Shown here piece by piece: positions 1,158 through 48,020 of a stretch of DNA of 64,000 nt. The stretch is from the IMG/VR virus record IMGVR_UViG_3300028558_000016, positions 310,001-374,000 of that record; one strand, given 5' to 3'. Under the pieces are notes generated by a model. It saw only the letters and a program-made list of their open reading frames with translations. It did not search any database and was not told the DNA's origin. The position numbers were made by a program, and so were the translations under genes. The number at the start of each line of letters is the position of its first letter. Position 1 is the first letter of the stretch.

Positions 1158-2003
1158 ATGTATAACATAAAATACCCGGTCGCATTCCACCCAGTGGATA
1201 TGGCCATAACAAGAATACACGAAGGAAGAATACAAGTTCTCCTTGCGCAAAAAGTAAAAGACACAGAAGGTGGAGCTAACATTGTTAGATTCCCTGGAGG
1301 TTTCCTTGATGTGTGTGACTCGTGTGCTGAAGAAGCAGCATTGAGAGAAGCAATGGAAGAAACAGGAATGAGATTTGGAAACTCTGCTATGGCAGATTAT
1401 TTCATCGGATACTTTGCTAAGAAGAAACCATTTACCGATAAGTTGAACAAACTTATAGAATCAAACGGTGATGCAAAGGAAATAACTGAAACCATCAACC
1501 AATTGCATGCAATCAAAATATCCGATGATGCTTTAGCATGGTTGAGAACAAGAACAACTTACATTGGTTCAACTAAGATTGATGATGCAAGATATGCTGA
1601 CACAGATCACAAAGTAATCACAAGCTTTTATGAGCTACATCCAAATCCAAAATTCGATAAGGATGGTGAAGGTCCATTTGATGACATCGCAAGAACAAAA
1701 TGGTTTTTCCTTTCAGACATTAAAGAAGAAATCATGCACAAGTCGCATGTTCCATTGTTCAACATGTTATTTGAAAAATACAAAGCAGAGAGACTTGCAG
1801 ACAACGTGTTTAACGCTGCTGAAGAGGTATTCAAATCAACAGAGGAAATGTTCAACACCTTCAAAAAAGAAACTGATGAGATTTTTGATGGAATAAAAAA
1901 GAAAATGCCTGAATACGAAAAGAAAGTGGATGAAGCAATGCAAGGCATGGGAAAGAAAATGGATAAGTTCTTTAGCGGTTTAGAAGATATTTTAAAATCT
2001 TAA
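1158..2003 (+). CDS. Nudix hydrolase (ADP-ribose pyrophosphatase-like)
   Basis: Nudix box PGGFLDVCDSCAEEAALREAMEETG; DDIA..KWF motif; upstream of NAMPT. Confidence 0.85.
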   Translation: MYNIKYPVAFHPVDMAITRIHEGRIQVLLAQKVKDTEGGANIVRFPGGFLDVCDSCAEEAALREAMEETGMRFGNSAMADYFIGYFAKKKPFTDKLNKLIESNGDAKEITETINQLHAIKISDDALAWLRTRTTYIGSTKIDDARYADTDHKVITSFYELHPNPKFDKDGEGPFDDIARTKWFFLSDIKEEIMHKSHVPLFNMLFEKYKAERLADNVFNAAEEVFKSTEEMFNTFKKETDEIFDGIKKKMPEYEKKVDEAMQGMGKKMDKFFSGLEDILKS

Positions 2004-4095: not shown

Positions 4096-4575
4096 ATGGA
4101 AAAACAAGTAAAAATATCTCAGTCTGTTGCCATCTTGATTGATGGCAACAACATTGAGATCAGCATACATAAGGATGCAGAGAAAGATAACGTGATGTGT
4201 GATTTCGATAATCTCGTTCCCAAGCTTATTGGCGACAGATCATTAAATCGCTTGGTGTACTTCAGAGAAGGAAAAAGCATCTCGCCTAAATTGGCAGACA
4301 GACTCCATAAATTATTTTATGGAGTTGTTAAGCCATGCAGGAAGAATGCTGACATTCGTTTAACCATTGAAGCCATACAACTTGCAAACAAAGTGGACAC
4401 AATAATAATTATGAGTGGAGATTCTGATTACATTGAGCTTGTTCAACATTTGCAATCACAGGGATTAAGAGTTGAAATAGCCGGAGTCCAATCAAGCACT
4501 TCAAAGTCATTGATTGAAGCGGCCGATTTCTTCCATCCAATAACTAAAGACGATTGGTTCACATTTAAAAATTAA
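4096..4575 (+). CDS. NYN/LabA-DUF88 PIN-like domain protein
   Basis: ILIDGNN, ADIRL, SGDSDY, LIEAADFF motifs. Confidence 0.9.
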   Translation: MEKQVKISQSVAILIDGNNIEISIHKDAEKDNVMCDFDNLVPKLIGDRSLNRLVYFREGKSISPKLADRLHKLFYGVVKPCRKNADIRLTIEAIQLANKVDTIIIMSGDSDYIELVQHLQSQGLRVEIAGVQSSTSKSLIEAADFFHPITKDDWFTFKN

Positions 4576-4580
4576 TTGAA

Positions 4581-4898
4581 ATGAAGCAAGACGAAGAAGA
4601 AGACCAAATCATTTGTATTTGTTCAAAAGAAAATTCGGCTCATACCATTGGTATAAGAGTTCCATGCCGTGGTCCAGGCTGTAATGCTCAGCTTTGGCTG
4701 AGTGACAGCACTATTAATAGAATTAAAAAGGAAAAAACGGATGTTGATTTAACGAAAACACCTCCTACCCCATTGTGTATGGATTGTGGATTGAAGGCTT
4801 TGAAAAATTCAAAGGATTTTAAAATAGCTCCACCAACCACCGAACAGATGGAAGAAATATTAAAGGCAATGACAGAAATCGATGCTCAACAAAGATGA
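4581..4898 (+). CDS. Hypothetical Cys-rich (Zn-binding) protein
   Basis: CxxxxC and CxxC motifs. Confidence 0.55.
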   Translation: MKQDEEEDQIICICSKENSAHTIGIRVPCRGPGCNAQLWLSDSTINRIKKEKTDVDLTKTPPTPLCMDCGLKALKNSKDFKIAPPTTEQMEEILKAMTEIDAQQR

Positions 4899-5514
4899 CA
4901 TAATCAAAGCAGCAGGAGTCCATCCATTAAAGGTTAAAAACATTTACGTGTTTGGATCTCGGGTATATGGAACCGCAACAGCGGACTCTGACTATGACAT
5001 CATTGTTGTTGCTAATTCCATGGATGAAAAGAGAGAAGTTGTTTATAAGGATCTCAATATCCATATTCATACTCCAGATAAATTCATTAGAGATCTCAAA
5101 CAGCTTGACATGCATAACCTCGAGTGCATCTTTGCTCCAGAAGGAGCAAAGATATTGGAAAAAGTAAATTATGTCGATGCTAATTTTAAGATCAATCCAG
5201 ACCAAATGAAATATGCTGCAATGAGCCAATCATTCAACAGGTTTCACACGGCCAAGGTGAAAATTCTCGATGGAGATTTTCACAGAGGAATTAAAAGCTT
5301 ATTTCATTCATTAAGGATATTATTGTTTTCGATGCAAATACTTCGTAATGGAAGGATCGATGATTTTTCAGAAGCTAACAAATTTTGGGCCGACATCAAG
5401 ATAGACATTCAACTTACAAAAAATATCACCAACGAGGAAGAGATGTGGAGATATTTCAAAGATAAATATCTTCCACAAAAAATTGAATTAGAAAAACGAT
5501 TAAAAGAAATGTAA
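4882..5514 (+). CDS. Pol-beta superfamily nucleotidyltransferase
   Basis: FGSRVYGTATADSDYD motif. Confidence 0.85.
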   Translation: MLNKDDIIKAAGVHPLKVKNIYVFGSRVYGTATADSDYDIIVVANSMDEKREVVYKDLNIHIHTPDKFIRDLKQLDMHNLECIFAPEGAKILEKVNYVDANFKINPDQMKYAAMSQSFNRFHTAKVKILDGDFHRGIKSLFHSLRILLFSMQILRNGRIDDFSEANKFWADIKIDIQLTKNITNEEEMWRYFKDKYLPQKIELEKRLKEM

Positions 5515-6402: not shown

Positions 6403-6858
6403 ATGGGACGAGAAAATTTTAAGCTATTAATACGTAATTTAAGAACGATGGAAACAACATGCGGGATATTTTTATTCTTAAAAAACGGAAAACTGTTGTT
6501 GGGACACGTAACAAACACTCAAGACAAATGGAGCATTCCGAAAGGACTTCCGGATGATGGAGAAGAATTGTTCGATGCAGCCAAACGAGAGATGTTCGAG
6601 GAGTCAAACATAGAATACGATAAGCTTAAGATAAACACCATTGTAAACAACCAATATACTTATTATAAGAATGGAAAGAAGAAGCTGTTCTCATTAACAG
6701 TTCACACTCATAATGAGGAAAAAGATTTTGATTTGAAATGTCATTCTTTGGTAAATGATGATTTTCCTGAAATAGATGGATATAAATTTGTCACAATAAA
6801 AGAAGCATTGGATATGGACATCCAAGAAACACAAAAAGAAATATTAAGAAATATATGA
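6403..6858 (+). CDS. Nudix hydrolase
   Basis: WSIPKGLPDDGEELFDAAKREMFEES; FPEID. Confidence 0.9.
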   Translation: MGRENFKLLIRNLRTMETTCGIFLFLKNGKLLLGHVTNTQDKWSIPKGLPDDGEELFDAAKREMFEESNIEYDKLKINTIVNNQYTYYKNGKKKLFSLTVHTHNEEKDFDLKCHSLVNDDFPEIDGYKFVTIKEALDMDIQETQKEILRNI

Positions 6859-7361
6859 ATAAGCTCGAATATAGAATGTATGGAATAGTTCCTTACAACA
6901 TTTCAGAAATACAAAAAGGAATCCAATTTGGACATGCTGTTGTAGAATACTCGTTGAAGTATTTTAAGAACGAAGACTTTCAACAGTGGGCCAAGAAGCA
7001 CAAAACATTCATGGTTATGAATGGAGGAACAACCAATATGGGAGAAGGAACAATTCAAGGAAGACCCGATTGGATGGTTGAAGAACTTAAAGGGTCATTA
7101 AATAAATACGCCGATTTACTTTCCAAAAATAAAATCAAATGCGCTTATTTCTTTGAGCCAGACTTAAATGATGCTTTAACTGCCGCGGTATTTCTTGCAG
7201 ATGAAAGAGTTTTCGACAAGATTAAATATCCTGATTATGTTCCTCTTTCTTTTGATTTAGCAAAAAATGATCCACAACACGAGAAAGAATGGGTCAAATC
7301 TATAGGAGGAAAACAAAATGTTTTCCTTCGTGAATTCATATCTAAACTAAGATTTGCATGA
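6855..7361 (+). CDS. PTH2-like (peptidyl-tRNA hydrolase type 2 fold) phage protein
   Basis: QKGIQFGHAVVEY ... FFEPDLNDALTA pattern. Confidence 0.6.
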   Translation: MNKLEYRMYGIVPYNISEIQKGIQFGHAVVEYSLKYFKNEDFQQWAKKHKTFMVMNGGTTNMGEGTIQGRPDWMVEELKGSLNKYADLLSKNKIKCAYFFEPDLNDALTAAVFLADERVFDKIKYPDYVPLSFDLAKNDPQHEKEWVKSIGGKQNVFLREFISKLRFA

Positions 7362-8044
7362 AAACGACAGACAAATACGTATTATTTTATACTGAGGTAT
7401 TTTCTCAGTGGCATCCTTCCAATTTTGAAGTAGGAGGTAAAAAATTCTGCACAGCAGAACAATTCATGATGTATTTCAAAGCATTAACGTTCGGTGATCA
7501 AGAGATTGCAGACAAGATATTAGCAACAAATAGTCCACGTGAACAAAAGAAACTTGGACGCGCTGTTAAAGGATTTGATGCTGTTAAATGGAATGCAATA
7601 GCCAAGGAAGTTGTATTCAAAGGAAACAGAGCTAAGTTTCAACAGAATCCAGAAATGTTCGAACAATTAATGGCAACAGGACACAAAGAACTTGTTGAAG
7701 CTTCCCCTTATGATACTATATGGGGAATAGGCTTTGATGAAAATGCTCCTGAAGCTCTTGATAAGTCAACATGGAATGGAACAAATTGGCTTGGCGAAGT
7801 ATTAACAAAGCTTAGAGATGTTCTTAGAAGAGAACAGACAATTCAAAACATAGTGAAACATGGTGAAGCTGAATTGGAAAAATTTGCCAGGGATTATCCA
7901 AATGACATAGGACGATTGTATGAAAGCTATAAAAAATTGAAAACACAATCTTGGTCTGAAGATTTTTTAAGAGGATATTTAGGAGCTATAACAGATTTAA
8001 TTATTATTAAAAAAGGACATTGGGGAGACTCATTTGTAAAATAA
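7358..8044 (+). CDS. NADAR/YbiA family protein
   Basis: FSQW, TAEQFMM, KKLGRAV, LVEASPYDTIWGIG, GTNWLG motifs. Confidence 0.92.
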   Translation: MKTTDKYVLFYTEVFSQWHPSNFEVGGKKFCTAEQFMMYFKALTFGDQEIADKILATNSPREQKKLGRAVKGFDAVKWNAIAKEVVFKGNRAKFQQNPEMFEQLMATGHKELVEASPYDTIWGIGFDENAPEALDKSTWNGTNWLGEVLTKLRDVLRREQTIQNIVKHGEAELEKFARDYPNDIGRLYESYKKLKTQSWSEDFLRGYLGAITDLIIIKKGHWGDSFVK

Positions 8045-8681: not shown

Positions 8682-9605
8682 GTGAAAAGATTCCACGATT
8701 ATAGCACATTCAACGGCCTTGAAAATCTAAAACAGATTGTTGCCAAGAAAGATCCTTCCATGAGCGAAGACCTCATGAAGGCACTATTTCCATTAAGAGA
8801 TAAGAACATTGGCAAAACATTGAAGGACATCATAAAGAGATTTGAAAAATCCGCTGAATACGATACACCGAACAAATGGTTCAGTCCAAACAAGTATAAC
8901 ACTTTTATGGAATACTTTCAAAGAGGATTAACCGACAAGAAGAAAGAAGAAATAGAAGCAACCATAGATCAATATCTCATGGTCATGCCTTCTGAATCAA
9001 ACATTGAATCAATAGGAAATTTCTCAGACACTTCATCGATATTAAGATTGAAGAAACCGACTAAAGACGTAGTTAAGGATTTAATGGATTTTGGAATAAG
9101 TGATGTGAGCACATTAAACTTTATAAGCCTAAAGCTTCTCAAATGTTATTACCACAGGGTGCATTGCCCAGTAAGCGGAACTATACAAAAGATAACATTC
9201 ATTGGAAGAGAAGAACCGTTGTTTGGAGACAATTCCCTATGGGTGGTTGAATTCAATTCAGAAGAAGGAAGAATTTACATGCTTGTAGTTGGAGAACTTT
9301 CTATACAGGATTTTAATTTCAACTTCAAAGAAGGAGACAAGGTTAACAAATTTGAAGAGCTCGGAAAATTCAATTGGGGTTCTCAGCTCGTTTTAATATA
9401 TGCAAAAGATTCATTCGTAAGCGAACCGTTGATCATAGAAAAGGAGAAATATTTTGTTGGTGATGGAATATTTAATAAGACAAAAATAGTTCAAGGCGAT
9501 ATTCTTAATTCAATGCCAATTGACCAGATAGGAAATGGACAAAGAAACGGAACAATATACGGAGATGATATTTTAAAAGCACCAACAGGAGCAAACATAT
9601 TTTAA
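8682..9605 (+). CDS. Phosphatidylserine decarboxylase-like protein
   Basis: F..YFQR.L, YYHRVHCPVSG, ELGKFNWGSQLVL (GxFxxGS autocleavage motif); GTG start. Confidence 0.7.
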   Translation: MKRFHDYSTFNGLENLKQIVAKKDPSMSEDLMKALFPLRDKNIGKTLKDIIKRFEKSAEYDTPNKWFSPNKYNTFMEYFQRGLTDKKKEEIEATIDQYLMVMPSESNIESIGNFSDTSSILRLKKPTKDVVKDLMDFGISDVSTLNFISLKLLKCYYHRVHCPVSGTIQKITFIGREEPLFGDNSLWVVEFNSEEGRIYMLVVGELSIQDFNFNFKEGDKVNKFEELGKFNWGSQLVLIYAKDSFVSEPLIIEKEKYFVGDGIFNKTKIVQGDILNSMPIDQIGNGQRNGTIYGDDILKAPTGANIF

Positions 9606-9943
9606 TGGAACAAGCAAAGATCGATAAGATAAACAGCATAATCGCAGATGCAAAGAATAAAATTAAATTTCTTGAATGTGACGGTTCAACGAGAGTATTT
9701 GATTACCTTCTAACTAAGAATAACATCAAACATACTGTAATGGTTGGAACTGCATCACTGGAAGATAAAGAGATGCTACATTATTGGATCAAAATTGATG
9801 ACATGATATTGGACCTAAAATCAAAGATGTGGTTTGGAGATGAAGCCTCAGAAGGATTATTCAAAACAAGCAAGGTCAAGTATAACGGTAAACCAATAGA
9901 GCTAAATACCTCCGAATTGATGTACCATATTTTAACAAGTTAA
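9605..9943 (+). CDS. Hypothetical protein (Cys-His-Asp, transglutaminase-like pattern)
   Basis: LECDG...HYWI...ILD. Confidence 0.45.
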   Translation: MEQAKIDKINSIIADAKNKIKFLECDGSTRVFDYLLTKNNIKHTVMVGTASLEDKEMLHYWIKIDDMILDLKSKMWFGDEASEGLFKTSKVKYNGKPIELNTSELMYHILTS

Positions 9944-9980
9944 ATTTTCGAGGCTCAAAAATATCTTTTATATTTGTTGC

Positions 9981-10208
9981 ATGAGCAATGAATTAATAAG
10001 AATACTTAAAGACATAACACATGACAATGAAGAAAAAAGACTTCAAAAAGCGAGTGAATGTTCTGATGGAATAAGCTATTACAATTGTAATGCTTTACCA
10101 ATGGTAGATCAATTAGCAAATGAACTTTCCAAGTTGTCTGAAGTTGAATTGTCATTGGCCTTAAGAATTCTCGTTAGAAAGACTCAGAAAAAGGCCCAGA
10201 AAAAATAA
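9981..10208 (+). CDS. Hypothetical protein
   Basis: ORF downstream of a TATATTTG box. Confidence 0.55.
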   Translation: MSNELIRILKDITHDNEEKRLQKASECSDGISYYNCNALPMVDQLANELSKLSEVELSLALRILVRKTQKKAQKK

Positions 10209-10233
10209 ATTTTTTAGTTTCAGAAATAGTTCC

Positions 10234-10241
10234 TATATTTG
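10234..10241 (+). promoter_or_regulatory. Bacteroidota-type sigma-A -7 box (TAnnTTTG)
   Basis: TATATTTG; same box recurs near 9969, 16490, 23375, 28358, 47648 and 54525 upstream of genes. Confidence 0.7.
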
Positions 10242-10244
10242 CAC

Positions 10245-10406
10245 TGATCATAGTTAAATGGCTTTATGCAATATATGTGTAGCTGTTCTACCTTCATCAG
10301 ATGCAAGGACAAAAATTTAGGTGCGGTTATCTCCTTGCTAAACTATCGCATAGGTCAGGATTGCATTGAGAAATGCAATTGTATGGACAGACTTTAGGTA
10401 TGATCA
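10245..10406 (+). ncRNA. Candidate structured ncRNA
   Basis: Terminal stem TGATCATA/TATGATCA, several internal helices, GAGA-tetraloop hairpin, no ORF, own promoter box. Confidence 0.55.
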
Positions 10407-10448
10407 TAATTTTAGAAACAAAAAAGGTATATAAGAATATAACAAGTC

Positions 10449-10520
10449 ATGAAAACAACATTGTCATTAAGTCTAAGTTTGTCGCTATCCTTATCAGGAT
10501 GGACTAACCGGGCTATGTGA
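10449..10520 (+). CDS. Leu/Ser-rich attenuator leader peptide MKTTLSLSLSLSLSLSGWTNRAM
   Basis: 12 alternating Leu/Ser codons using 7 different codons, followed by a terminator and a Leu/Ser tRNA array. Confidence 0.85.
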   Translation: MKTTLSLSLSLSLSLSGWTNRAM

Positions 10521-10549
10521 TAATTTCTGACTAATAAGAAATTTGAATG

Positions 10550-10580
10550 AACCCGGTGGAAACATCGGGTTTTTTATTTT
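10550..10580 (+). terminator. Attenuator terminator
   Basis: AACCCGGTG-GAAA-CATCGGGTT + T tract; 5' arm CCCGGT also complementary to ACCGGG (10507-10512) in the leader. Confidence 0.85.
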
Positions 10581-10588
10581 ATACACAT

Positions 10589-10671
10589 GCCCATGTGGCG
10601 GAATTGGTAGACGCGCCGGTCTTAGGAACCGGTGCCTTTAAGGCGTGCAGGTTCGAGTCCTGTCATGGGTA
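10589..10671 (+). tRNA. tRNA-Leu(TAG)
   Basis: Cloverleaf, anticodon arm CCGGT-CTTAGGA-ACCGG, long variable arm. Confidence 0.95.
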
Positions 10672-10752
10672 CAACGTGGTGAAAGTACATTCAGACTGTA
10701 CCATCAGATTTTAGCTACTGATGAAGCATTTGTGGTGATGCTGCTGCGAATT

Positions 10753-10839
10753 GGTGAGATGTCCGAGTGGTTTAAGGAGCAACCCTGGAAAGGTTGTATA
10801 CGGGAAACCGTATCGTGGGTTCGAATCCCACTCTCACCG
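10753..10839 (+). tRNA. tRNA-Ser(GGA)
   Basis: CAACC-CTGGAAA-GGTTG, long variable arm, G73. Confidence 0.95.
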
Positions 10840-10849
10840 CAAATAAAAT

Positions 10850-10934
10850 GGAAGGTTGGTAGAGCGGTCTATTGCACCAGTCTTGAAAACTGGAGATCCT
10901 ACGGGGTCCGTGAGTTCGAATCTCACACCTTCCG
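10850..10934 (+). tRNA. tRNA-Ser(TGA)
   Basis: CCAGT-CTTGAAA-ACTGG, long variable arm, G73. Confidence 0.95.
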
Positions 10935-10939
10935 CAATT

Positions 10940-11027
10940 GGAGAGCTACTCAAGTTGGTTAAGAGGCGCGTTTGCTAAACGTGTAGGACGAGAAATCGTT
11001 GGGTGGGTTCGAACCCCACGCTCTCCG
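10940..11027 (+). tRNA. tRNA-Ser(GCT)
   Basis: CGCGT-TTGCTAA-ACGTG, long variable arm. Confidence 0.95.
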
Positions 11028-11038
11028 CAGAAAATTCT

Positions 11039-11121
11039 GCCCCCATGGTGGAATTGGTAGACACGCAGGACTTAAAATCCTGTGCCCTTAGGGCGTACGA
11101 GTTCGAGTCTCGTTGGGGGTA
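11039..11121 (+). tRNA. tRNA-Leu(TAA)
   Basis: CAGGA-CTTAAAA-TCCTG. Confidence 0.95.
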
Positions 11122-11128
11122 CATAAAT

Positions 11129-11210
11129 GCCGAGTTGGCGGAATTGGTAGACGCGCTGGTCTCAAACACCAGTGACGAAAGTCGTGTGGGTTCGAGTCCC
11201 ACACTCGGTA
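11129..11210 (+). tRNA. tRNA-Leu(CAA)
   Basis: CTGGT-CTCAAAC-ACCAG. Confidence 0.95.
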
Positions 11211-11226
11211 CAAGAAGAAGAATAAA

Positions 11227-12690
11227 ATGGAAAATGATAAAAAATATTGCTTGGTGATGTTTCCTTATCCGTCTGGAGATGGATTGCACATTGGACATTG
11301 CTACAACTACTTGATAGTTGATAGCTATTGTCGTTGGATGAAGAGAAAAGGAATTGAAGTGTTTCAACCATTTGGTTATGACGCTTTCGGTTTGCCTGCG
11401 GAGAATTATGCGATCAAGCATAACAGAGATCCAAAAGAAGTCACCTATGAAAACATAGAAAATTTCAGAAGGCAGATGAAGAGATTGGATACTAATTATG
11501 AAGAGAAGTTAATTACAGCTGATCCATCTTATTTCAAATGGACACAATGGTTGTTCACAAAGATGTTGGAGAAGGGAATTGCTTACAAGAAATTTCATCC
11601 AGTAAACTTTTGTCCATCTTGCGCAACAGTGATTGCCAATGAGCAGGTGAAGGAAGGAAAATGTGAGAGATGCAATTCAGTTGTTGAGATGAAAAACTTG
11701 AATCAATGGTTCTTCAGAATAACAGACTACACAGATAGGTTGATCAAGAACTTGCAATGGTTGGATTATCCCGAGAAAACCAAGAAGCAACAATTACATT
11801 GGTTGGAGAAGATGAAAGAAAACAAGATCGATTGGTGTGTGTCAAGACAGAGAAAATGGGGATGTCCAATTCCTGTTGAAGGAGAGGAAGATACTTTGGA
11901 CACATTTGTTGACAGCTCATTTTACTACTTGAGATTCTTGACGGATTCTGAAGATGAATTCTTGCCAAGAGAAAAATATAAGCAGGTTGATTTGTACGTC
12001 GGAGGAAATGAACATGCTTGCATGCATTTGATTTATGCAAGATTTGTGAACATGTTCTTGTATGACTTGGGAATTGTTGAACAAGAAGAACCGTTCAAGA
12101 AGTTGATTCATCAGGGAATGATCAAGATGAATGGAACAAAGATGTCCAAGTCTATCGGCAATGTTGTTAATCCGGATGGGTATGATCCAGATGAATTGAG
12201 ATTTTACTTGATGTTCATTGGACATTATTTTGATGGCGGAGATTGGAACGATCAAAACATTGTTGGCATAAGAAAATTCTTTGCACGATGGGATAAGCTT
12301 ACTTTTAGAGAAGCAAAGGAAGGAATTGAATCTATGGATTTGACTGAATTTGAAAACCAGATCGATGGTTATGTGAAAGCTTTCAAGTTCAATAAGGTTG
12401 TTAGTTCATTCATGGAATTTTACAACAATAATAGCAGCAGAAACTTTGACAAGGAAACCAGATTGAAGTTGAGAAGAATGTTGGAGTGTTTTGCGCCAAC
12501 AAGATTTTCTAAAGATGAAAGGCCTCCAGTTGGCATGGATGAATTAAGAAGAAAATCCAATGAGTTGTCTGAGAACGTAAACAAGATTGAAGTAATGGTT
12601 AATAAAATTTTTAAAGATGTTGAACAAAAAGAAAATATCACCGGAATATCCGAGAATACCTCACTTGATGGGGAAGTCAAATCTGTATGA
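11227..12690 (+). CDS. leuS: Minimal leucyl-tRNA synthetase (no CP1 editing domain)
   Basis: MFPYPSG-LHIGH, GYDAFGLPAEN, DWCVSRQRKWG, DTFVDSS, GGNEHA, KMSKS; only 487 aa. Confidence 0.9.
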   Translation: MENDKKYCLVMFPYPSGDGLHIGHCYNYLIVDSYCRWMKRKGIEVFQPFGYDAFGLPAENYAIKHNRDPKEVTYENIENFRRQMKRLDTNYEEKLITADPSYFKWTQWLFTKMLEKGIAYKKFHPVNFCPSCATVIANEQVKEGKCERCNSVVEMKNLNQWFFRITDYTDRLIKNLQWLDYPEKTKKQQLHWLEKMKENKIDWCVSRQRKWGCPIPVEGEEDTLDTFVDSSFYYLRFLTDSEDEFLPREKYKQVDLYVGGNEHACMHLIYARFVNMFLYDLGIVEQEEPFKKLIHQGMIKMNGTKMSKSIGNVVNPDGYDPDELRFYLMFIGHYFDGGDWNDQNIVGIRKFFARWDKLTFREAKEGIESMDLTEFENQIDGYVKAFKFNKVVSSFMEFYNNNSSRNFDKETRLKLRRMLECFAPTRFSKDERPPVGMDELRRKSNELSENVNKIEVMVNKIFKDVEQKENITGISENTSLDGEVKSV

Positions 12691-13321
12691 CGATGACATT
12701 GAGATCAATGTTGAGTTAGGGTTTGATGCCTTTGTACAAGAGAAGGTTGATGGAGCAAACTGTGGAATCAGTTGGTTCGATGGACCCATTCTCAGAAACA
12801 GAACCCATGTGTTAAGAAAGGGATTTGAAAGAGACACTCCAGCAAAGAAACAATTTGTTCCAGCTTGGAATTGGTTGCATGAAAGAGAAGATGACTTGAA
12901 GGAGATGATGAAGAAGTGGAATGGACAGATAACTGTTTATGGAGAGTGGATGCTTGCAAAACATTCTATTGGATATGAGAAGCTTCCAGATTATTTTCTT
13001 GCTTATGACATTTGGTCGTGTGAAGAAAACAAGTTTGTTTCTCCGAAGGAATGCAAGGAACTTTTGAATGGGACTGGCATAAGATGGATCGAAGCAGAAA
13101 GAATAAGCATTCAATCGTTCTCTGATTTGAAGTCAGTTCTTGATGTTCCCTCTAAGTACAGAGATGGAATTAAAGAAGGAATAGTTATCAAGAAAACTGA
13201 CGAAGACGATAAGTGGATAGAGAAGACTTTCAAGGTTGTTAGAAAAGATTTTGAAAGGGCTGATGAAAGCTGGAATAAGAAAAAGCTTGAAAAGAATAAG
13301 CTGATAAAGAGGAGTGCCTGA
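12617..13321 (+). CDS. RNA ligase (ATP-dependent nucleotidyltransferase)
   Basis: YPRIPHL, QEKVDGAN (motif I), YGEW, FLAYDI, EGIVIK. Confidence 0.85.
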   Translation: MLNKKKISPEYPRIPHLMGKSNLYDDDIEINVELGFDAFVQEKVDGANCGISWFDGPILRNRTHVLRKGFERDTPAKKQFVPAWNWLHEREDDLKEMMKKWNGQITVYGEWMLAKHSIGYEKLPDYFLAYDIWSCEENKFVSPKECKELLNGTGIRWIEAERISIQSFSDLKSVLDVPSKYRDGIKEGIVIKKTDEDDKWIEKTFKVVRKDFERADESWNKKKLEKNKLIKRSA

Positions 13322-13393
13322 GTGGCTGAAAGGACCGGTCTCGAAAACCGGCACACCCAAAAGGTGTCGTGAGTTCGAATCTCACCTCCTCTG
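13308..13393 (+). tRNA. tRNA-Ser(CGA)
   Basis: CCGGT-CTCGAAA-ACCGG; overlaps the end of the RNA ligase ORF. Confidence 0.93.
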
Positions 13394-13432
13394 CATTTTT
13401 TAATTTGATGATTTTTTTGTAAATTCACTATC

Positions 13433-13738
13433 ATGAATGATGAAGATAAAAAAATAAAGGGATCATTGTTTTTCTTGTACATCGGCAAGCTTAAAGAATT
13501 GGGTTTGATAGAAGGTGGCGCAGGAGATTTGACCATGAAAGGTTTTGACATTGCCATTGATGCCTATAACAGTGGACATAGATTGTCAGATGAGGAGATT
13601 AGTAATTTTCTCGAAGCCGCTCCTGGAATGGACGATGACGACACAATAGAGGCAGCATTTGGAATGATAGCCAAGATGCAAGAAATTGGATTTGATGGAA
13701 TGAAAGAATTGGTTGAACGAGTAAAGAAAACATTATGA
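13433..13738 (+). CDS. Hypothetical protein
   Basis: ORF. Confidence 0.6.
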   Translation: MNDEDKKIKGSLFFLYIGKLKELGLIEGGAGDLTMKGFDIAIDAYNSGHRLSDEEISNFLEAAPGMDDDDTIEAAFGMIAKMQEIGFDGMKELVERVKKTL

Positions 13739-14445
13739 AAAAGAAATTAGTGGTGTTTAGCGGTGCAGGAGTTTCTGCTGAGAGCGGAATTCCTACATTC
13801 AGAGATTCAAATGGTCTTTGGGAAAACCATAAGATGGAAGATGTTGCTACTCCAGAAGGATGGGAGAAAAACAGAGAGCTTGTTCTCAACTTCTACAATC
13901 TTATGAGAACGAAACTCAAAGCAGTTGTTCCGAATAAAGCTCACAATATAATTGCAGAGCTTGAAGAACATTTTGAAGTTACAGTCATCACACAAAACAT
14001 AGATGACTTGCATGAGAGAAGCGGCTCAAAGAAGGTCATACATCTTCATGGAGAATTAATGAAGAGCAGAAGCACATTTAATCCAAATCTAAAATACGAG
14101 TGTACTGGAAATATAAACATAGGTGACAAATGTGAGAAAGGTTCTCAATTGAGGCCTGACATAGTTTGGTTTCATGAAAATGTTTATCACCTTGACACTG
14201 CGGCTGAATTGGTAGAACAGTGCGATATTCTTCTTGTTGTTGGAACTTCATTAAATGTTTGGCCTGCAGCAGGATTGTTATATGTGACGAAACCGGAAAC
14301 TGAAATATATTGCATTGATCCAAAAACAGTTGTTGGAAGTGATATTCAAGTTACTCACATAAAGAAGAAAGCGAGTGAAGGGATGGAGAAATTTAAAAAG
14401 ATTATTCTCGAGAAAAAAGATAAGAAAGAAAATTGCTGTTTATAA
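13735..14445 (+). CDS. cobB: Sir2/CobB NAD-dependent deacylase
   Basis: GAGVSAESGIPTFR, TQNIDDLHE, HLHG, LRPDIVWF, VGTS. Confidence 0.95.
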   Translation: MKKKLVVFSGAGVSAESGIPTFRDSNGLWENHKMEDVATPEGWEKNRELVLNFYNLMRTKLKAVVPNKAHNIIAELEEHFEVTVITQNIDDLHERSGSKKVIHLHGELMKSRSTFNPNLKYECTGNINIGDKCEKGSQLRPDIVWFHENVYHLDTAAELVEQCDILLVVGTSLNVWPAAGLLYVTKPETEIYCIDPKTVVGSDIQVTHIKKKASEGMEKFKKIILEKKDKKENCCL

Positions 14446-14449
14446 TAAT

Positions 14450-14531
14450 GCCCAGGTGTTGGAATTGGTAGACAAGCACGGTTGAGGGCCGTGTGCAGTA
14501 ATGCGTAGGGGTTCGAGTCCCCTTCTGGGTA
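14450..14531 (+). tRNA. tRNA-Leu(GAG)
   Basis: CACGG-TTGAGGG-CCGTG. Confidence 0.95.
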
Positions 14532-14532
14532 C

Positions 14533-14745
14533 ATGGAATTAATAGGAAAAAAATTCACAAGAAAAGATAGAACCTTCGTAGAAGATTTGCTCAAGAGCAC
14601 AACAGTGTACACCATAGAAGAATCAAAAAAGAAAGGTGTTTTAGTTGTTAGATGGGATAAGGACGGAGAGTCGGCTCATACAACATGCTCAATAAAAGAA
14701 GCTGAAAAAAACGTGAAGAAGGGAAAATGGGTTTTACAGCCATGA
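14533..14745 (+). CDS. Hypothetical protein
   Basis: ORF. Confidence 0.55.
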   Translation: MELIGKKFTRKDRTFVEDLLKSTTVYTIEESKKKGVLVVRWDKDGESAHTTCSIKEAEKNVKKGKWVLQP

Positions 14746-15778: not shown

Positions 15779-15933
15779 CGCACGACGAAGATTGCCCTAA
15801 TTGTGGTGAGCTTGTTGAAGTAGAGATTTGGGAAGAGGGAGAATGCCCGAGATGTTCTTCCCGCTATTGGTGGGAAGAAATATTTGATGAAGATGATTAC
15901 GAGACAACAGATCCTATTTTAGTTTGGGAATAA
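15775..15933 (+). CDS. Small Zn-ribbon protein (52 aa, not in ORF track)
   Basis: MTHDEDCPNCG...ECPRC; ATGA overlap. Confidence 0.6.
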   Translation: MTHDEDCPNCGELVEVEIWEEGECPRCSSRYWWEEIFDEDDYETTDPILVWE

Positions 15934-16461: not shown

Positions 16462-16503
16462 AATCTTTTTAATTTTAATTGATTTTTAGTATATTTGTTC
16501 TCT

Positions 16504-17238
16504 GTGATAGAGATAAAATGTATATTAAAATACGATCCTGTTCCATTATCTGGAAAAGCAGAAACCATGTGCAAACCTTGGTGGATGATCGCAACATGCG
16601 AAGGAGATCTCACTGAATATTATGCATGGCTTCTTAAAAAACGAACAGGATTAATTCTCCAACGCCCTGCATGGGGCGCACATATCTCAGTCATAAGAGG
16701 AGAAGAACCACCCAACAAAGAATTATGGAAAAAATACCAGGACAAAGAAGTCACTTTGCTCTATGATCCAAACGTCAGAACAAATGGAGATCATTGGTGG
16801 ATGAGAGTCCATTGCAACGAACTTCTTGACATAAGAGAAGAATTAGGTCTTCCAAGATTTGGAGCATTAACTTTACACCTCACGTTAGGAAGACCAATCC
16901 CAAGACACGAAGAAGCATCAGATTATTTCCATACAGTTTTTAAATCATTCGCTCCATCGGCGCCAATAAGACCATACATGACACAAGAAGAAGCTTTAAA
17001 GAATTTGTCTTTGCCTCCAATGGAAGTAAAGCATAAAGAATTAAAAACACCTGAACATTCAGACTCTATGTTCAGAAAGGAATGTCCAAACTGTGAGACT
17101 GGATTATTGATGATGAAAAGAAATCAGTCAACGCTCGCTCTTGAAAAAGATGATAATTGCACTTATTGTGGAAGACGATTCACTTACACTGACATAAAAG
17201 AAAACTCAGTAATATTAGAATATAATGAAAAAGCTTGA
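16504..17238 (+). CDS. 2H-phosphoesterase-like protein with C-terminal Zn ribbon
   Basis: HISV and HLTL motifs; CPNC..CTYC; probable GTG start. Confidence 0.55.
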   Translation: MIEIKCILKYDPVPLSGKAETMCKPWWMIATCEGDLTEYYAWLLKKRTGLILQRPAWGAHISVIRGEEPPNKELWKKYQDKEVTLLYDPNVRTNGDHWWMRVHCNELLDIREELGLPRFGALTLHLTLGRPIPRHEEASDYFHTVFKSFAPSAPIRPYMTQEEALKNLSLPPMEVKHKELKTPEHSDSMFRKECPNCETGLLMMKRNQSTLALEKDDNCTYCGRRFTYTDIKENSVILEYNEKA

Positions 17239-17600: not shown

Positions 17601-18548
17601 ATGAAAGAAATAATATTACCGGTAGGACTTCCTGCAGCAGGAAAATCCACAATAGTAAATGATTACGTCAGCCAGGGGTTTGCTAAACTTTCGAGAGATG
17701 AAATTGGAGGAGGTCTTGAAGTAGACGGAAAAGTAAATACAAAACTCAAGGATTGGATCCGAATGGGCAAGGAACAAATAATAATGGATGCTACTTACAT
17801 GACTAAGGAAGTTAGGAAGCATGTTATAGACATTGCGAAGAAGAATGGATATAAAGTAACATGCGTTCACATTGCAACATCAATAGAAGATTCTCAATTT
17901 AATGCAGTTTCGAGAATGATCAACAGGCATGGAAAACTATTTCAACACGCAGACGATTATACCAAGGCAAAAGATCCTAACATGTTTCCAGTTGCTGCCT
18001 TATACAAAGCGAATAAAATAATCGAAAAGCCAACCATGTCAGAAGGATTCGACGAGGTTAAAATAGTTCCTTTCAAAAGGAAATTAAACGGCTACACAAA
18101 CAAAGCAATATTATTTGATTATGATGGAACACTAAGACAGACTAAAAATGCCGATTCATTATATCCAACAGATCCAAGCGACATTGAAATTCTTCCTGGG
18201 AGAACTGAAAAGATCAATGAATTGAAAAAAGAAGGTTACATCATACTCGGTGTTTCAAATCAAAGTGGTGTTGCTAAAGGAGTATTGACTTACGAAATGG
18301 CCGATAAGTGTTTCAAGAAAACAAATGAGCTTTTAGGTGTTGACATCGATTACAGATTTTGTTCTCACAAGGTTCCACCTATCACATGTTATTGCAGAAA
18401 ACCAGGAGTTGGATTTGGGGTTGAGTTCATCGAGAAATATAAATTGGATCCATCACAATGTATCATGGTTGGAGATATGAAATCCGATGAGACCTTCGCA
18501 AAGAGATGTGGTTTTAAATTTGTTCACGTAGATAAATTCTTTAAATGA
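17601..18548 (+). CDS. Polynucleotide kinase/3'-phosphatase (P-loop kinase + HAD IIIA)
   Basis: GLPAAGKS Walker A; FDYDGTL, SNQSG, CRKP, MVGD..SD. Confidence 0.85.
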   Translation: MKEIILPVGLPAAGKSTIVNDYVSQGFAKLSRDEIGGGLEVDGKVNTKLKDWIRMGKEQIIMDATYMTKEVRKHVIDIAKKNGYKVTCVHIATSIEDSQFNAVSRMINRHGKLFQHADDYTKAKDPNMFPVAALYKANKIIEKPTMSEGFDEVKIVPFKRKLNGYTNKAILFDYDGTLRQTKNADSLYPTDPSDIEILPGRTEKINELKKEGYIILGVSNQSGVAKGVLTYEMADKCFKKTNELLGVDIDYRFCSHKVPPITCYCRKPGVGFGVEFIEKYKLDPSQCIMVGDMKSDETFAKRCGFKFVHVDKFFK

Positions 18549-19057: not shown

Positions 19058-19536
19058 AGCTTCTTTGTTATGACATGGTCTTCTATGTCCTCAAAGTTAT
19101 CGTTGAACTTAATTCTTTTCTTCTTAAGATATTCCTTGACAGATCCTATTCGTGTAAATCCCTCTCGGTAATAAAAACTGAGAGGTTTTCCTTCTTTATT
19201 TACGTATGAATTTATTTTCTTGCATCCGGCTTCCTTAGCAATCGAACACAGAAATTTCATAACTTCTTTTCCTTCTCCTTTATTTCTGTGTTGTGGAAGA
19301 ATACCGAGCCAACCGAGCCAAAGCTCTTTTGTGTCAAAATCGAGAGAATATAAACCACATACTCCTATGGTTTCTTTCTTATCATTCTTGATCAACCAAA
19401 CCTCCCAAAATTTTCCATCATCCACACATTTGCACCACATCTTCATAGTTTCTTTGAAGGACTCTCCAAAGTCAGCCATAAGTCCTGTAGTCAAACATTT
19501 GTACTGTCTGATATTTCTTGACTGAATAAATTTCAT
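19054..19536 (-). CDS. GNAT acetyltransferase
   Basis: LGWLGILPQHRNKGEG; FYYREGF. Confidence 0.85.
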   Translation of the reverse strand: MKFIQSRNIRQYKCLTTGLMADFGESFKETMKMWCKCVDDGKFWEVWLIKNDKKETIGVCGLYSLDFDTKELWLGWLGILPQHRNKGEGKEVMKFLCSIAKEAGCKKINSYVNKEGKPLSFYYREGFTRIGSVKEYLKKKRIKFNDNFEDIEDHVITKKL

Positions 19537-48012: not shown

Positions 48013-48020
48013 ATTTGCAG

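Follow-up and report, generated by a model that had tools for sequence, protein, structure and literature searches.

The window analysed here is a 64,000-nt stretch of a complete 482-kb phage genome recovered from a rhizosphere metagenome (positions 310,001 to 374,000 of IMGVR_UViG_3300028558_000016). The phage belongs to the huge-phage clade of LR745206.1, and its host is probably a member of the Bacteroidota. Within this window lie eight tRNA genes, four for Leu and four for Ser, which are interleaved with genes for a short leucyl-tRNA synthetase (LeuRS), an RNA ligase and a Sir2-family protein, and which are preceded by a small open reading frame and an intrinsic terminator (Table 1). A preliminary description of the sequence had reported the eight tRNAs, the three interleaved protein genes and a PNKP gene about 3 kb downstream, and these observations are confirmed by our analysis.

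Table 1. Features of the Leu/Ser locus (positions refer to the window)
Position	Strand	Feature	Details
10234-10241	+	TATATTTG box	Matches the Bacteroidota-type -7 promoter consensus TAnnTTTG
10242-10412	+	Insertion of about 170 nt	Between the promoter-like box and the leader; bounded by TGATCATA repeats
10426-10435	+	GGTATATAAG box	14 nt upstream of the leader ATG
10449-10520	+	Leader ORF	MKTTLSLSLSLSLSLSGWTNRAM; 23 codons plus TGA
10461-10496	+	Sensor run	12 alternating Leu/Ser codons: TTG TCA TTA AGT CTA AGT TTG TCG CTA TCC TTA TCA
10507-10512	+	Region 2 (ACCGGG)	Distal part of the leader ORF, 6 nt before the stop codon; pairs with CCCGGT (10552-10557), the terminator's 5' arm
10522-10543	+	Small hairpin	AAUUUCU / AGAAAUU; between stop codon and terminator, enclosed by the antiterminator helix
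10549-10582	+	Intrinsic terminator	10-bp stem with GAAA loop (10549-10572), then TTTATTTTAT; ends 7 nt before the first tRNA
10589-10672	+	tRNA-Leu (TAG)	First of a block of six tRNAs (10589-11211)
10753-10840	+	tRNA-Ser (GGA)	
10850-10935	+	tRNA-Ser (TGA)	
10940-11028	+	tRNA-Ser (GCT)	
11039-11122	+	tRNA-Leu (TAA)	
11129-11211	+	tRNA-Leu (CAA)	Last of the block of six
11227-12690	+	Minimal LeuRS	487 aa
12617-13321	+	RNA ligase, PF09414 family	234 aa; nucleotidyltransferase domain only; motifs KVDG (KxDG), YGEW, EGIVIKK, KVVRK
13308-13394	+	tRNA-Ser (CGA)	
13433-13738	+	Acidic protein of unknown function	101 aa
13735-14445	+	Sir2-family NAD-dependent deacylase-like protein	236 aa; motifs GAGVSAESGIPTFR, QNIDDLH, HLHG
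14450-14532	+	tRNA-Leu (GAG)	
16495-17238	+	2H phosphoesterase-like protein	Two HxS/T motifs (HISV, HLTL); C-terminal CxxC...CxxC element
17601-18548	+	Bifunctional PNKP	N-terminal P-loop kinase (GLPAAGKST), C-terminal HAD phosphatase (DYDGT); 3,069 nt after the last tRNA

tRNA genes and encoded proteins

ARAGORN finds exactly the eight tRNAs, all of which score 42.8-58.9 bits against Rfam RF00005, whose gathering score is 29. All eight have long variable regions of 12-18 nt, mostly drawn as a stem-loop, and the five whose drawings were inspected show A73 (Leu) or G73 (Ser).

The synthetase best matches bacterial LeuRS (TIGR00396) at 401.6 bits, which is below the 548-bit cut-off of this profile. 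HIGH and KMSKS motifs are present, and their residues are invariant in the alignment examined (A2), yet the CP1 editing domain and the C-terminal part are absent. The best PDB match is 3ZIU, the naturally CP1-less LeuRS of Mycoplasma mobile, to whose last ~115 residues no match was found. Well over a hundred homologues of 410-450 aa share 63-87% identity with this protein. The ligase was recognised by profile search (PF09414, E 3e-27), but has no match to any solved structure by sequence, and the 101-aa acidic protein gave no significant family match. The Sir2 assignment (PF02146) is supported by an E-value of 2.8e-45, and the gene is syntenic with LeuRS in four relatives (designated L013, L015, L019 and L021), while PNKP is syntenic in L013 and L015. 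The 2H phosphoesterase-like protein, which was not noted in the preliminary description, rests on a match to 2H-SAK below the cut-off (E 8e-4) together with the presence of both HxS/T motifs.

A leader and terminator upstream of the first tRNA

The 12 codons of the sensor run are cognate to seven of the operon's eight anticodons, with only CTY, read by Leu-GAG, missing. The same leader is kept in four relatives. Against L021 and L015, there are five differences within the run, all of which are synonymous, whereas the four differences in the tail are non-synonymous. The lack of a Shine-Dalgarno site before the leaders is normal here, as the genome does not use such sites.

The duplex between region 2 and the terminator's 5' arm, i.e. 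the antiterminator, has a predicted energy of -12.1 kcal/mol (P = 0.0005 against random genome segments), and the position of region 2 means that a ribosome at the stop codon would mask it. With the sensor run masked, as by a stalled ribosome, all five Leu/Ser attenuators folded into the antiterminator, although at equilibrium the terminator form is still favoured under this condition, so that the switch would have to be kinetic, as it is in the classical cases. Unmasked, the sensor run pairs with the distal ORF, as in the classical four-region design. The terminator stem is kept by compensatory changes at 3-4 positions in relatives. Yet, in L021 and L015 the core of the antiterminator shrinks to CCGG plus two outer pairs, and five sequences show no clean covariation of this helix. 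An Rfam search returned a weak Trp_leader hit at 10474-10578 (22.9 bits, below the gathering score of 41); in total, two attenuators give such weak, sub-threshold hits, to the Trp and Thr operon leaders, and no T-box hit was found.

Further upstream, the TATATTTG box lies inside a block (AAATTTTTTAGTTTCA...TTCCTATATTTG) shared with relatives and with the leaders of clusters c2 and c7, two of the seven tRNA clusters (c1-c7) of the genome. Its reading as a promoter is an inference from the known consensus. The GGTATATAAG box is conserved as G(G/A)TATATA(A)G before the leaders of c1, c2, c3 and c7 as well as before those of L013, L014, L015, L021 and LR745206.1, and is possibly a second (phage?) promoter or an initiation element. 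By contrast, c4, c5 and c6 lack the promoter-like boxes within 90 nt of their leaders. The insertion of about 170 nt is present in a single copy, is absent from the leaders of the other clusters and has no significant fold (z = -0.67); it remains unexplained.

Seven tRNA clusters and their leaders

The preliminary description had asked whether other tRNA clusters of the genome possess codon-matched leaders of their own, and all of them do. The genome carries at least 56 tRNAs in seven clusters, and all 55 tRNAs called by ARAGORN are sorted into amino-acid-specific clusters. The all-Leu/Ser composition is not due to chance, but it is not special to this cluster either. All seven clusters have a small ATG ORF that is rich in the cluster's own amino acids and is followed within about 25-37 nt by a strong intrinsic terminator. 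Per-cluster empirical P values are 0.0005-0.029 against 4000 random 700-nt segments, and the true leader-to-cluster pairing is the single best of 5040 permutations. In all 11 attenuators tested (seven in this genome and four in LR745206.1), the terminator's 5' arm can pair instead with a segment of the distal leader ORF, with a complementarity exceeding that of random genome segments (Fisher P = 4e-13), even though the antiterminator in c3 is only 6 bp. All nine synthetase-like genes examined in the clusters lie in the cluster that holds their cognate tRNAs, while c1 has no synthetase among the ORFs tested.

Leader composition co-varies with tRNA content in relatives, where at least 20 clusters have such a leader. 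In LR745206.1, HKNFSKSHKWFS precedes His/Phe/Trp/Lys/Arg/Ser, MNLNMTMNLTLNVVNITLCNIR precedes Asn/Arg/Leu/Val/Ile/Thr/Met, IASYESYYEEG precedes Glu/Tyr/Ile/Gly/Met/Ala and PVNPQPQDQDP precedes Pro/Asp/Gln. In the relative L017, LRLRSFVLVQVLFVLF is found before Leu/Phe/Val/Arg and QQQQQQ before four Gln tRNAs. A census of IMG/VR with 17 unique candidates gave a mean match of 0.78 against 0.44 +/- 0.04 for permuted pairs, a value reached by 0 of 10,000 permutations. Matching at the level of individual isoacceptors is, however, not demonstrated: 36 of 39 anticodons have a cognate codon in their own leader, but resampling synonymous codons gives 33.3 on average (P = 0.09).

One may ask whether the small ORFs and terminators constitute a switch at all, since the terminators could simply end upstream transcription units, the sorted clusters could reflect tandem duplication of tRNA genes, and the peptide matches could be incidental or reflect some other use of the peptides. 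Isoacceptors do look like local duplicates, with long and short pairs of the same anticodon lying side by side, and both the non-significant codon-level matching and the absence of expression data leave room for this view. We nevertheless consider it very unlikely, because the joint statistics argue against coincidence, leader composition tracks cluster content across very different groupings in at least seven other genomes or contigs, and changes within the sensor run are synonymous only. Moreover, the terminator sits directly before the first tRNA with a complementary segment placed where a terminating ribosome would cover it, and low-complexity small ORFs directly before strong terminators are, genome-wide, almost confined to tRNA clusters.

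Attenuation and counter-defence as possible functions

The preliminary description interpreted the locus as a counter-defence module against a host nuclease that targets type II (long-variable-arm) tRNAs, combining replacement, recharging and repair of these molecules. This interpretation is supported only in part. The locus does combine replacement tRNAs, a putative charging enzyme and, on the same strand, a predicted RNA end-healing and sealing set consisting of ligase, 2H phosphoesterase-like protein and PNKP; it also has a codon-matched leader, as had been suspected, and a role against tRNA depletion is plausible. In addition, the Leu and Ser grouping is kept in L013, L014, L015, L021 and L038, and Leu+Tyr (L027) and Phe+Leu+Ser+Tyr (L039) also occur, meaning that type II species recur together more often than a random partner would. 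Bacterial Schlafen-type tRNases exist as phage defences (PMC13056530), and the neighbourhood carries NAD-salvage and ADP-ribose-reversal genes typical of counter-defence islands.

Yet, neither type II shape as the organising principle nor a type-II-specific nuclease as the target is supported. Nine other long-variable-arm tRNAs lie in other clusters and are sorted by the codon they read rather than by shape, namely Tyr and long versions of Asn, Met, Lys, Glu, Gln, Trp and His, while the six other clusters, made mostly of type I tRNAs, have the same leader/terminator/synthetase design. RNA ligases occur in three clusters (c1, where it is Rnl1-like, c3 and c5). In the syntenic operon of L013 and L015 (82-84% LeuRS identity), tRNA-Leu(UAG) is a 74-nt type-I-like tRNA, and the ligase is missing in L013, L014 and L015. 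In more distant relatives, Leu is grouped with Cys/Val, Phe/Val/Arg(/Gln), Ile/Met/Asn/Thr/Val or Arg instead of Ser, which is placed elsewhere. Finally, the bacterial Schlafen defences characterised so far are not type-II selective (PMC13056530, PMC13462974). A module dedicated to type II tRNAs therefore appears unlikely.

Instead, we favour, with reasonable though not full confidence, a model in which ribosome-mediated transcription attenuation gates each of the seven tRNA/synthetase operons, giving a demand-driven supply of tRNAs. In this view, transcription would start upstream of the leader ORF. If charged Leu- and Ser-tRNAs are plentiful, the ribosome would run to the stop codon and mask region 2, the terminator hairpin would form and RNA polymerase would stop before the first tRNA. 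If any of these aminoacyl-tRNAs is scarce, the ribosome would stall in the sensor run, freeing region 2 to form the antiterminator, such that polymerase reads through into the six tRNAs, LeuRS, the RNA ligase, tRNA-Ser(CGA), Sir2 and tRNA-Leu(GAG), and possibly further on into the 2H phosphoesterase-like protein and PNKP genes. The products would relieve the stall, making the loop self-limiting, and Leu and Ser would be together because one leader reports on both, not because they share the type II shape. While the anatomy of the locus, the statistics and the conservation are established by the sequence analysis, the response to charged-tRNA levels, the promoter and the extent of the transcript are inferred, the model presupposes coupled transcription and translation in the host, and no RNA run was found to hold this DNA, so neither termination at 10572-10582 nor read-through on starvation has been observed. 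Full-text literature searches found no prior description of such a system, and the other six operons would be gated by the same design, each with a leader written in that operon's own amino acids.

The attenuators could also serve counter-defence, albeit not of a type-II-specific kind. It is possible, though tentative, that they exist mainly as sentinels for tRNA-targeting host immunity of any specificity (PrrC, PARIS, PtuAB, Schlafen or VapC-like) and switch on replacement tRNAs and repair enzymes only for the tRNA species under attack, a reading that shares the attenuation mechanism and differs only in the selective pressure. Nothing in the sequence distinguishes immunity from starvation, from codon-usage demand or from host tRNA loss caused by the phage itself, and the repair genes are not conserved parts of the operons in relatives. 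Still, a stall-sensing leader would be inferred to respond to tRNA cleavage just as it does to starvation, and phage tRNAs are known to rescue infection from tRNA-cleaving defences (literature cited within PMC13056530). In line with this, three of the seven operons contain RNA ligases, an RlaP nucleotidyltransferase lies near the Leu/Ser locus in addition to PNKP and the 2H-like protein, and an Rnl1-like ligase lies downstream of the Lys-tRNA cluster on the same strand, echoing T4 Rnl1/PrrC.

The Leu/Ser cluster and its leader

The observation in the preliminary description, that eight Leu and Ser tRNA genes are interleaved with a LeuRS, an RNA ligase and a sirtuin and that a PNKP follows about 3 kb downstream, was confirmed. 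ARAGORN recovered exactly these eight genes, and all of them exceed the Rfam tRNA gathering score (42.8-58.9 bits against 29). Their variable regions are 12-18 nt long and the five drawings inspected show the A73 (Leu) or G73 (Ser) discriminator, in agreement with type II (long-variable-arm) tRNAs. The positions of these and all other features are collected in the following table.

Features of the locus and of the genome. Window positions are converted to genome positions by adding 310000; positions within L004 and L005, two loci of the same genome, are given in parentheses.
Frame	Position	Strand	Feature	Properties
Window	1158-2003	+	NUDIX	upstream island
Window	2301-4094	+	NAMPT	upstream island
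Window	4096-4575	+	NYN RNase	upstream island
Window	4882-5514	+	RlaP-type nucleotidyltransferase	upstream island
Window	6403-6858	+	NUDIX	upstream island
Window	7358-8044	+	NADAR	upstream island
Window	8682-9605	+	phosphatidylserine-decarboxylase-like protein	upstream island
Window	10234-10241		TATATTTG box	inferred promoter element
Window	10242-10412		inserted segment of about 170 nt	bounded by TGATCATA repeats
Window	10426-10435		GGTATATAAG box	inferred promoter element
Window	10449-10520		leader ORF, 23 codons	encodes MKTTLSLSLSLSLSLSGWTNRAM
Window	10507-10512		ACCGGG	inside the leader ORF, 6 nt before its stop codon
Window	10549-10572		terminator stem	10 bp, GC-rich, GAAA loop
Window	10552-10557		CCCGGU	5' arm of the terminator
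Window	to 10582		U-tract	ends 7 nt before tRNA-Leu(TAG)
Window	from 10589		tRNA-Leu(TAG)
Window	from 10753		tRNA-Ser(GGA)
Window	from 10850		tRNA-Ser(TGA)
Window	from 10940		tRNA-Ser(GCT)
Window	from 11039		tRNA-Leu(TAA)
Window	from 11129		tRNA-Leu(CAA)
Window	11227-12690		LeuRS-like class I synthetase	487 aa
Window	12617-13321		RNA ligase (PF09414)	KVDG (KxDG), EGIVIKK, KVVRK and the other nucleotidyltransferase motifs
Window	from 13308		tRNA-Ser(CGA)
Window	13735-14445		Sir2
Window	from 14450		tRNA-Leu(GAG)
Window	15855-15879		terminator-like site	same strand as the operon
Window	16495-17238		2H phosphoesterase-like protein	HxS/T motifs HISV and HLTL
Window	17601-18548		PNKP (kinase-HAD-phosphatase)	GLPAAGKST and DYDGT; 3,069 nt after the last tRNA
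Window	19161-19185		terminator-like site	same strand as the operon
Window	48020-48092	-	tRNA(CUA)	67.7 bits in Rfam
Window	54549-55451		weak GlyRS-like ORF	300 aa; outside any cluster
Window	58276-58349	+	tRNA(CUA)
Genome	c[5778,5869], c[6974,7059], c[7373,7464], 124757-124843, 386605-386692, 387507-387591, 413915-413998, 414375-414464		long-variable-arm Asn, Met, Lys, Glu, Gln, Trp and His tRNAs	84-92 nt
Genome	124929-125720		AlaRS fragment	263 aa
Genome	374278-374351	+	tRNA(CUA)
Genome	387449-391398 (L004 1449-5398)		Asn/Gln/Tyr cluster	GluRS and GatB-like protein
Genome	394865-398577 (L004 8865-12577)		Pro/Phe/Val operon	AlkB-like and further genes
Genome	414409-415185		HisRS-like protein	258 aa
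Genome	415182-415913		TrpRS-like protein	243 aa
Genome	417396-417476 (L005 4396-4476)		tRNA with anticodon GAU (Ile)	37.4 bits in Rfam; missed by ARAGORN

The window belongs to a single contig of 482,156 bp with 36.8% GC, an IMG/VR virus record that CheckV rates complete and that was assembled from a rhizosphere metagenome. A search of the phage collection found no near-identical DNA. The LeuRS is 64.5% identical to that of the 634,780-bp 'uncultured phage' LR745206.1, and genomes of that size have been placed in the Mahaphage clade and are predicted to infect Bacteroidetes (Al-Shayeb et al. 2020, PMC7162821). The genome makes no use of Shine-Dalgarno sites, since only 5.9% of starts have one as compared to 12.3% of random positions, and regions upstream of starts are A-rich, which fits such a host.

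Directly upstream of the first tRNA lies a short ORF containing 12 consecutive Leu/Ser codons, followed by a small hairpin and then by a strong intrinsic terminator. Like the other genes of the genome, the leader ORFs start with ATG in an A-rich context. The ACCGGG segment, which is placed where a ribosome at the leader stop codon would cover it, is complementary to the 5' arm of the terminator. In silico, the unmasked sensor run pairs with the distal part of the ORF and the terminator forms; with the sensor run masked, as by a stalled ribosome, and the 3' arm not yet transcribed, the distal ORF pairs with the 5' arm of the terminator instead. This is the classical four-region attenuator. Yet, the antiterminators are short, and a comparison of five sequences gave no clean covariation for them, even though the terminator stem is kept by compensatory changes. 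Rfam returned a weak, sub-threshold match to the Trp operon leader (22.9 bits against a gathering score of 41), whereas no T-box or other known riboswitch was hit, with no T-box match at E <= 1 in 9900-14700.

Two conserved boxes precede the leaders of three of the other six clusters (c1, c2 and c7) and of the Leu/Ser cluster (c3), as well as the leaders of LR745206.1 and of L013, L014, L015 and L021, four contigs from relatives. One, (c)TATATTTG, is like the Bacteroidota -7 promoter element; the other, G(G/A)TATATA(A)G, lies 12-31 nt before the leader ATG. GATATATAG occurs 11 times and GTATATAAG twice in the genome. This may be a tandem host and phage promoter arrangement. A scan for sigma-70-type promoters gave nothing above shuffled sequence. 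The segment of about 170 nt between the first box and the leader is absent from the equivalent position in c1, c2 and c7, does not fold better than shuffles (z = -0.67) and is single copy.

Matched leaders across the genome and in relatives

ARAGORN finds 55 tRNAs in the genome and Rfam adds at least one more. Apart from three tRNA(CUA) genes and one Cys, they fall into seven clusters that are sorted by amino acid. Whether other tRNA clusters carry leaders of their own had been set beforehand as a test, and all seven were found to have one, each followed within about 25-37 nt by a GC-rich hairpin and a U-tract. An intrinsic terminator between the leader and the downstream genes is likewise seen in relatives.

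Amino acids, leader peptides and synthetase-like genes of the seven tRNA clusters
Cluster	Amino acids	Leader peptide	Synthetase-like genes
c1	Thr/Asn/Gly/Lys/Met	MNSQQIFKITTGTTTTTKTGKGKPMCFGMCE
c2	Asp/Cys/Glu/Ala	...FTADCADEQ...	non-discriminating AspRS and an AlaRS fragment
c3	Leu/Ser	MKTTLSLSLSLSLSLSGWTNRAM	LeuRS
c4	Asn/Gln/Tyr	MRFNNNNQQQYQQNNY...	TyrRS, a bacterial GluRS and a GatB-like protein, beside the Gln and Asn tRNAs
c5	Pro/Phe/Val	...IIPQFQFVVPF...	ProRS
c6	Trp/His	...NHIHKHQIWH...	short HisRS-like and TrpRS-like proteins
c7	Ile/Arg/Met	MMNTVNITRIIRIRRR...	an ArgRS-like protein

Against 4000 random 700-nt genome segments, the per-cluster probabilities are 0.0005-0.029, and the true pairing of leaders with clusters is the single best of 5040 permutations. 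Genome-wide, strongly low-complexity small ORFs directly before strong terminators are almost confined to tRNA clusters. Pairing between the distal ORF and the 5' arm of the terminator is seen in 11 of 11 attenuators tested, with complementarity exceeding that of random segments in 10 of 11 (Fisher P = 4e-13). In contrast, matching at the level of isoacceptors is not beyond expectation: 36 of 39 cluster anticodons have a cognate codon in their own leader, but resampling synonymous codons already gives 33.3 on average (P = 0.09), and we therefore claim matching at the amino acid level only. The synthetases follow the same sorting, as all nine synthetase-like genes in the clusters sit with their cognate tRNAs.

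In LR745206.1, which has 61 tRNA matches in differently composed clusters, the leaders differ accordingly: HKNFSKSHKWFS precedes His/Phe/Trp/Lys/Arg/Ser, MNLNMTMNLTLNVVNITLCNIR precedes Asn/Arg/Leu/Val/Ile/Thr/Met, IASYESYYEEG precedes Glu/Tyr/Ile/Gly/Met/Ala and PVNPQPQDQDP precedes Pro/Asp/Gln. The short LeuRS has well over a hundred metagenomic homologues of 410-450 aa at 63-87% identity, and contigs with 76-84% LeuRS identity keep the Leu/Ser leader and operon, namely L021 (MKTTLSLSLSLSLSLSGWTNRTM), with the same gene order as here, L015 (MKTTLSLSLSLSLSLSGWMSRTM), L013 (MRTSLSLSLSLSSLSLSGQRAGLCFNLS) and L014 (MKTVTTLSSSLSLSLLHEHDGLLFVVS). Within the sensor run, all five differences between this window and L021/L015 are synonymous, whereas the four differences in the tail are non-synonymous. 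A search for the exact leader DNA pattern returned nothing in IMG/VR and, in metagenome contigs, hit only the window's own contig and that of L015.

Among loci from more distant relatives, L017 has a Leu/Arg/Phe/Val leader before those tRNAs plus LeuRS, and a QQQQQQ leader before four Gln tRNAs. Other groupings are Leu/Cys/Val (L018, L030 and L032), Phe/Leu/Gln/Arg/Val (L025), Leu/Tyr (L027), Phe/Leu/Ser/Tyr (L039) and Ile/Leu/Met/Asn/Thr/Val (L034 and L043). No leader was called by our criteria in three further loci, L016, L019 and L020. A search of IMG/VR with the single LeuRS protein returned no relatives, so that an alignment query was needed. In an automated census of 58 IMG/VR loci, 17 unique terminator-plus-ORF candidates upstream of tRNA runs match their own clusters at 0.78, as compared to 0.44 +/- 0.04 for permuted pairs, and 0 of 10,000 permutations reach the observed value.

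The closest known systems are the leader peptide attenuators of enterobacterial operons, i.e. trp, his, leu, pheA, the multivalent thr (Thr+Ile) and ilvGMEDA (Ile/Leu/Val) leaders and, above all, pheST, where the Phe-rich pheM leader controls a synthetase. Shared with these are a short ORF with a run of regulatory codons, a 1:2/2:3/3:4 set of alternative helices, an intrinsic terminator before the structural genes, multivalent sensing of several amino acids, a synthetase among the controlled genes, as in pheST, and the weak Rfam similarity to the Trp and Thr leaders, the latter seen for the c7 attenuator (Thr_leader, 25.1 bits, below the gathering score). Here, however, the controlled genes are tRNA genes plus cognate synthetases and repair enzymes rather than biosynthetic enzymes, the element is in a virus and lacks a Shine-Dalgarno site, it occurs seven times per genome and partitions the whole tRNA set, and one leader can cover up to seven amino acids. 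T-box riboswitches, which sense uncharged tRNA upstream of synthetase genes in Firmicutes, follow the same regulatory logic, coupling the expression of charging capacity to the charging state of a specific tRNA through a terminator/antiterminator choice, but the sensor here is a translated ORF and not a tRNA-binding RNA.

What the analysis establishes is the arrangement of these elements, their statistics and their conservation. Everything about function is in silico: that read-through responds to limiting aminoacyl-tRNA and depends on leader translation, the assignment of the promoters and the 3' extent of the transcript are inferred, and among public RNA runs none was found to hold this DNA, with only proteins of relatives matching.

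Leader peptide attenuation as such is textbook. Its use to gate tRNA genes, in a virus, seven times per genome and with leaders that co-evolve with cluster content, appears to be new, as full-text literature searches found no description of leader peptides or attenuators in front of phage tRNA clusters. The survey of huge phages, which covers the same clade as that of LR745206.1 and reports up to 67 tRNAs and 15 synthetases per genome, contains no occurrence of 'leader', 'attenuat' or 'RNA ligase' and does not describe the amino acid sorting of the clusters or their leaders (PMC7162821).

Why phages carry tRNAs is debated, with codon usage, host shut-off and escape from tRNA-cleaving immunity as candidates, and how the expression of these tRNAs is controlled is essentially unknown. 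A stall-sensing leader in front of every tRNA/synthetase operon would mean that the phage measures the supply of each group of aminoacyl-tRNAs and tops it up on demand, turning the debate into the simple experimental question of which stimulus opens each attenuator. It would also extend a mechanism of amino acid biosynthesis to tRNA genes, to viruses and probably to Bacteroidota hosts, offer compact, orthogonal, amino acid-specific sensors, and explain the otherwise odd amino acid sorting of tRNA clusters in huge phages. A bolder reading, which we regard as possible but unlikely, is that a clade of huge phages runs an amino acid-resolved feedback controller of translation capacity, in which each operon is gated by a leader written in exactly the amino acids it supplies and the leader is rewritten whenever tRNA genes move between operons. 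These would be the first attenuators known to control tRNA genes and the first in a virus. In its strongest form, the leaders would act as sentinels, such that when a host defence or the phage's own shut-off removes particular tRNAs, only the matching replacement tRNAs, synthetase and RNA repair enzymes are switched on.

Type II tRNAs, RNA repair and tRNA depletion

The preliminary description had interpreted the operon as a counter-defence module against a host nuclease targeting type II tRNAs, combining replacement, recharging and repair. This interpretation is only partly supported, because the ingredients of replacement and repair are present, while the proposed restriction to type II tRNAs does not hold. 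The design is general and most clusters are type I. Nine tRNAs outside c3 also have long variable arms, namely Tyr (85 nt) and long versions of Asn (92 and 88 nt), Met (86), Lys (92), Glu (87), Gln (85), Trp (84) and His (90), to which a D-arm-poor long-arm tRNA-Ile can be added, and long-arm tRNAs are spread over five clusters. Where the anticodon is duplicated, the long copy usually lies next to a normal-length copy with the same anticodon, so that tRNAs are filed by the codon they read and not by shape. Conversely, L013 and L015 have a 74-nt tRNA-Leu(UAG) with a 4-nt variable loop in the syntenic operon. In addition, the characterised bacterial Schlafen defences cut several host and phage tRNAs, or the T-loop broadly, and are not type II selective (PMC13056530, PMC13462974). 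For annotation, this shows that 'type II only' clusters need not point to a type II-specific threat.

In favour of the idea, Leu recurs with Ser and/or Tyr in several lineages (Leu/Ser, Leu/Tyr and Phe/Leu/Ser/Tyr), which may reflect common descent of long-arm genes or something functional, and the neighbourhood is rich in counter-defence-like genes, with NAMPT, two NUDIX proteins, NADAR, a NYN RNase and an RlaP nucleotidyltransferase upstream and the 2H phosphoesterase-like protein and PNKP downstream. A general role against tRNA depletion remains possible and is compatible with the attenuator.

T4-type tRNA repair, in which Pnkp and Rnl1 counter the PrrC anticodon nuclease, and phage tRNA arrays that rescue infection from PARIS or retron PtuAB (T5) are also among the closest known systems. 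Phage-encoded tRNAs lie together with a kinase-phosphatase and RNA ligase(s), the catalytic motifs of both enzymes are intact, and the PNKP has the T4-like domain order with the kinase at the N-terminus. However, the ligase here is a stand-alone PF09414 domain and not Rnl1, any target nuclease remains hypothetical, and the repair genes are not a conserved functional unit with the tRNA cluster: the ligase is absent from the syntenic operons of L013, L014 and L015 and truncated to 134 aa in L021, whereas PNKP is kept in L013 and L015. Only the leader, the tRNAs and LeuRS are constant, with Sir2 kept in L013, L015, L019 and L021. RNA ligases occur in three clusters, as an Rnl1-like gene downstream of c1, the Lys cluster, on the same strand and as PF09414 genes in c3 and c5, and a further PF09414 gene lies elsewhere. 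To our knowledge, no stall-sensing leader has been described for the T4 or T5 tRNA regions.

Minimal synthetases, unusual tRNAs and neighbouring genes

The best family match of the LeuRS is bacterial LeuRS (TIGR00396, E = 6.6e-120, against 7.5e-44 for the next family, ValRS), yet its 401.6 bits fall below the cut-off of 548.4 and its 487 aa compare with about 843 for the full-length architecture with the CP1 editing domain and the C-terminal tRNA-binding domain. Its best solved relative is the LeuRS of Mycoplasma mobile (PDB 3ZIU, E 1.8e-92), a natural enzyme without the CP1 editing domain. The alignment runs straight across the CP1 insertion point and ends at residue 522 of 637, leaving the last ~115 residues of the M. 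mobile enzyme without a match, and the phage enzyme is shorter still. HIGH (residues 21-24) and KMSKS (residues 305-309) are present and invariant across 28 family members. It is therefore best called a minimal and probably non-editing LeuRS-like enzyme, with its activity inferred from sequence alone. Several other synthetase-like genes are strongly shortened as well, i.e. the AlaRS fragment and the HisRS-like, TrpRS-like and weak GlyRS-like proteins, all of which score below their family cut-offs. The GluRS and GatB-like protein beside the Gln and Asn tRNAs of c4, together with the non-discriminating AspRS of c2, suggest that the phage brings parts of the indirect (transamidation) route to Gln-tRNA and Asn-tRNA.

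In this clade, variable-arm length is decoupled from amino acid identity, since normally type I tRNAs occur as long-arm versions while relatives (L027, L034 and L017) carry type I-like tRNA-Leu of 74-77 nt and a tRNA-Tyr of 73 nt. These tRNAs recall allo-tRNA-like scaffolds. The additional tRNA-Ile found by Rfam has an almost absent D-arm and a 21-nt variable region, and lies directly after the terminator of the c7 attenuator. The three tRNA genes with a CUA (amber-reading) anticodon suggested TAG recoding, but this was rejected on present evidence, as TAG ends 16 of 354 long ORFs, frames do not stay open past TAG and coding density is normal under table 11, the only code used here.

The island of NAD and RNA-related genes just upstream of the operon is syntenic in L013 and L015. 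NAMPT plus NUDIX resembles phage NAD+ reconstitution pathways, and the Sir2 in the operon may belong functionally with this island. Finally, the Pro/Phe/Val operon carries, besides its PF09414 RNA ligase, an AlkB-like 2OG-Fe(II) oxygenase, a metallophosphoesterase and an R2K ATP-grasp protein. The same AlkB-like and R2K genes lie near LeuRS in L016, and this may be an RNA repair or modification set.
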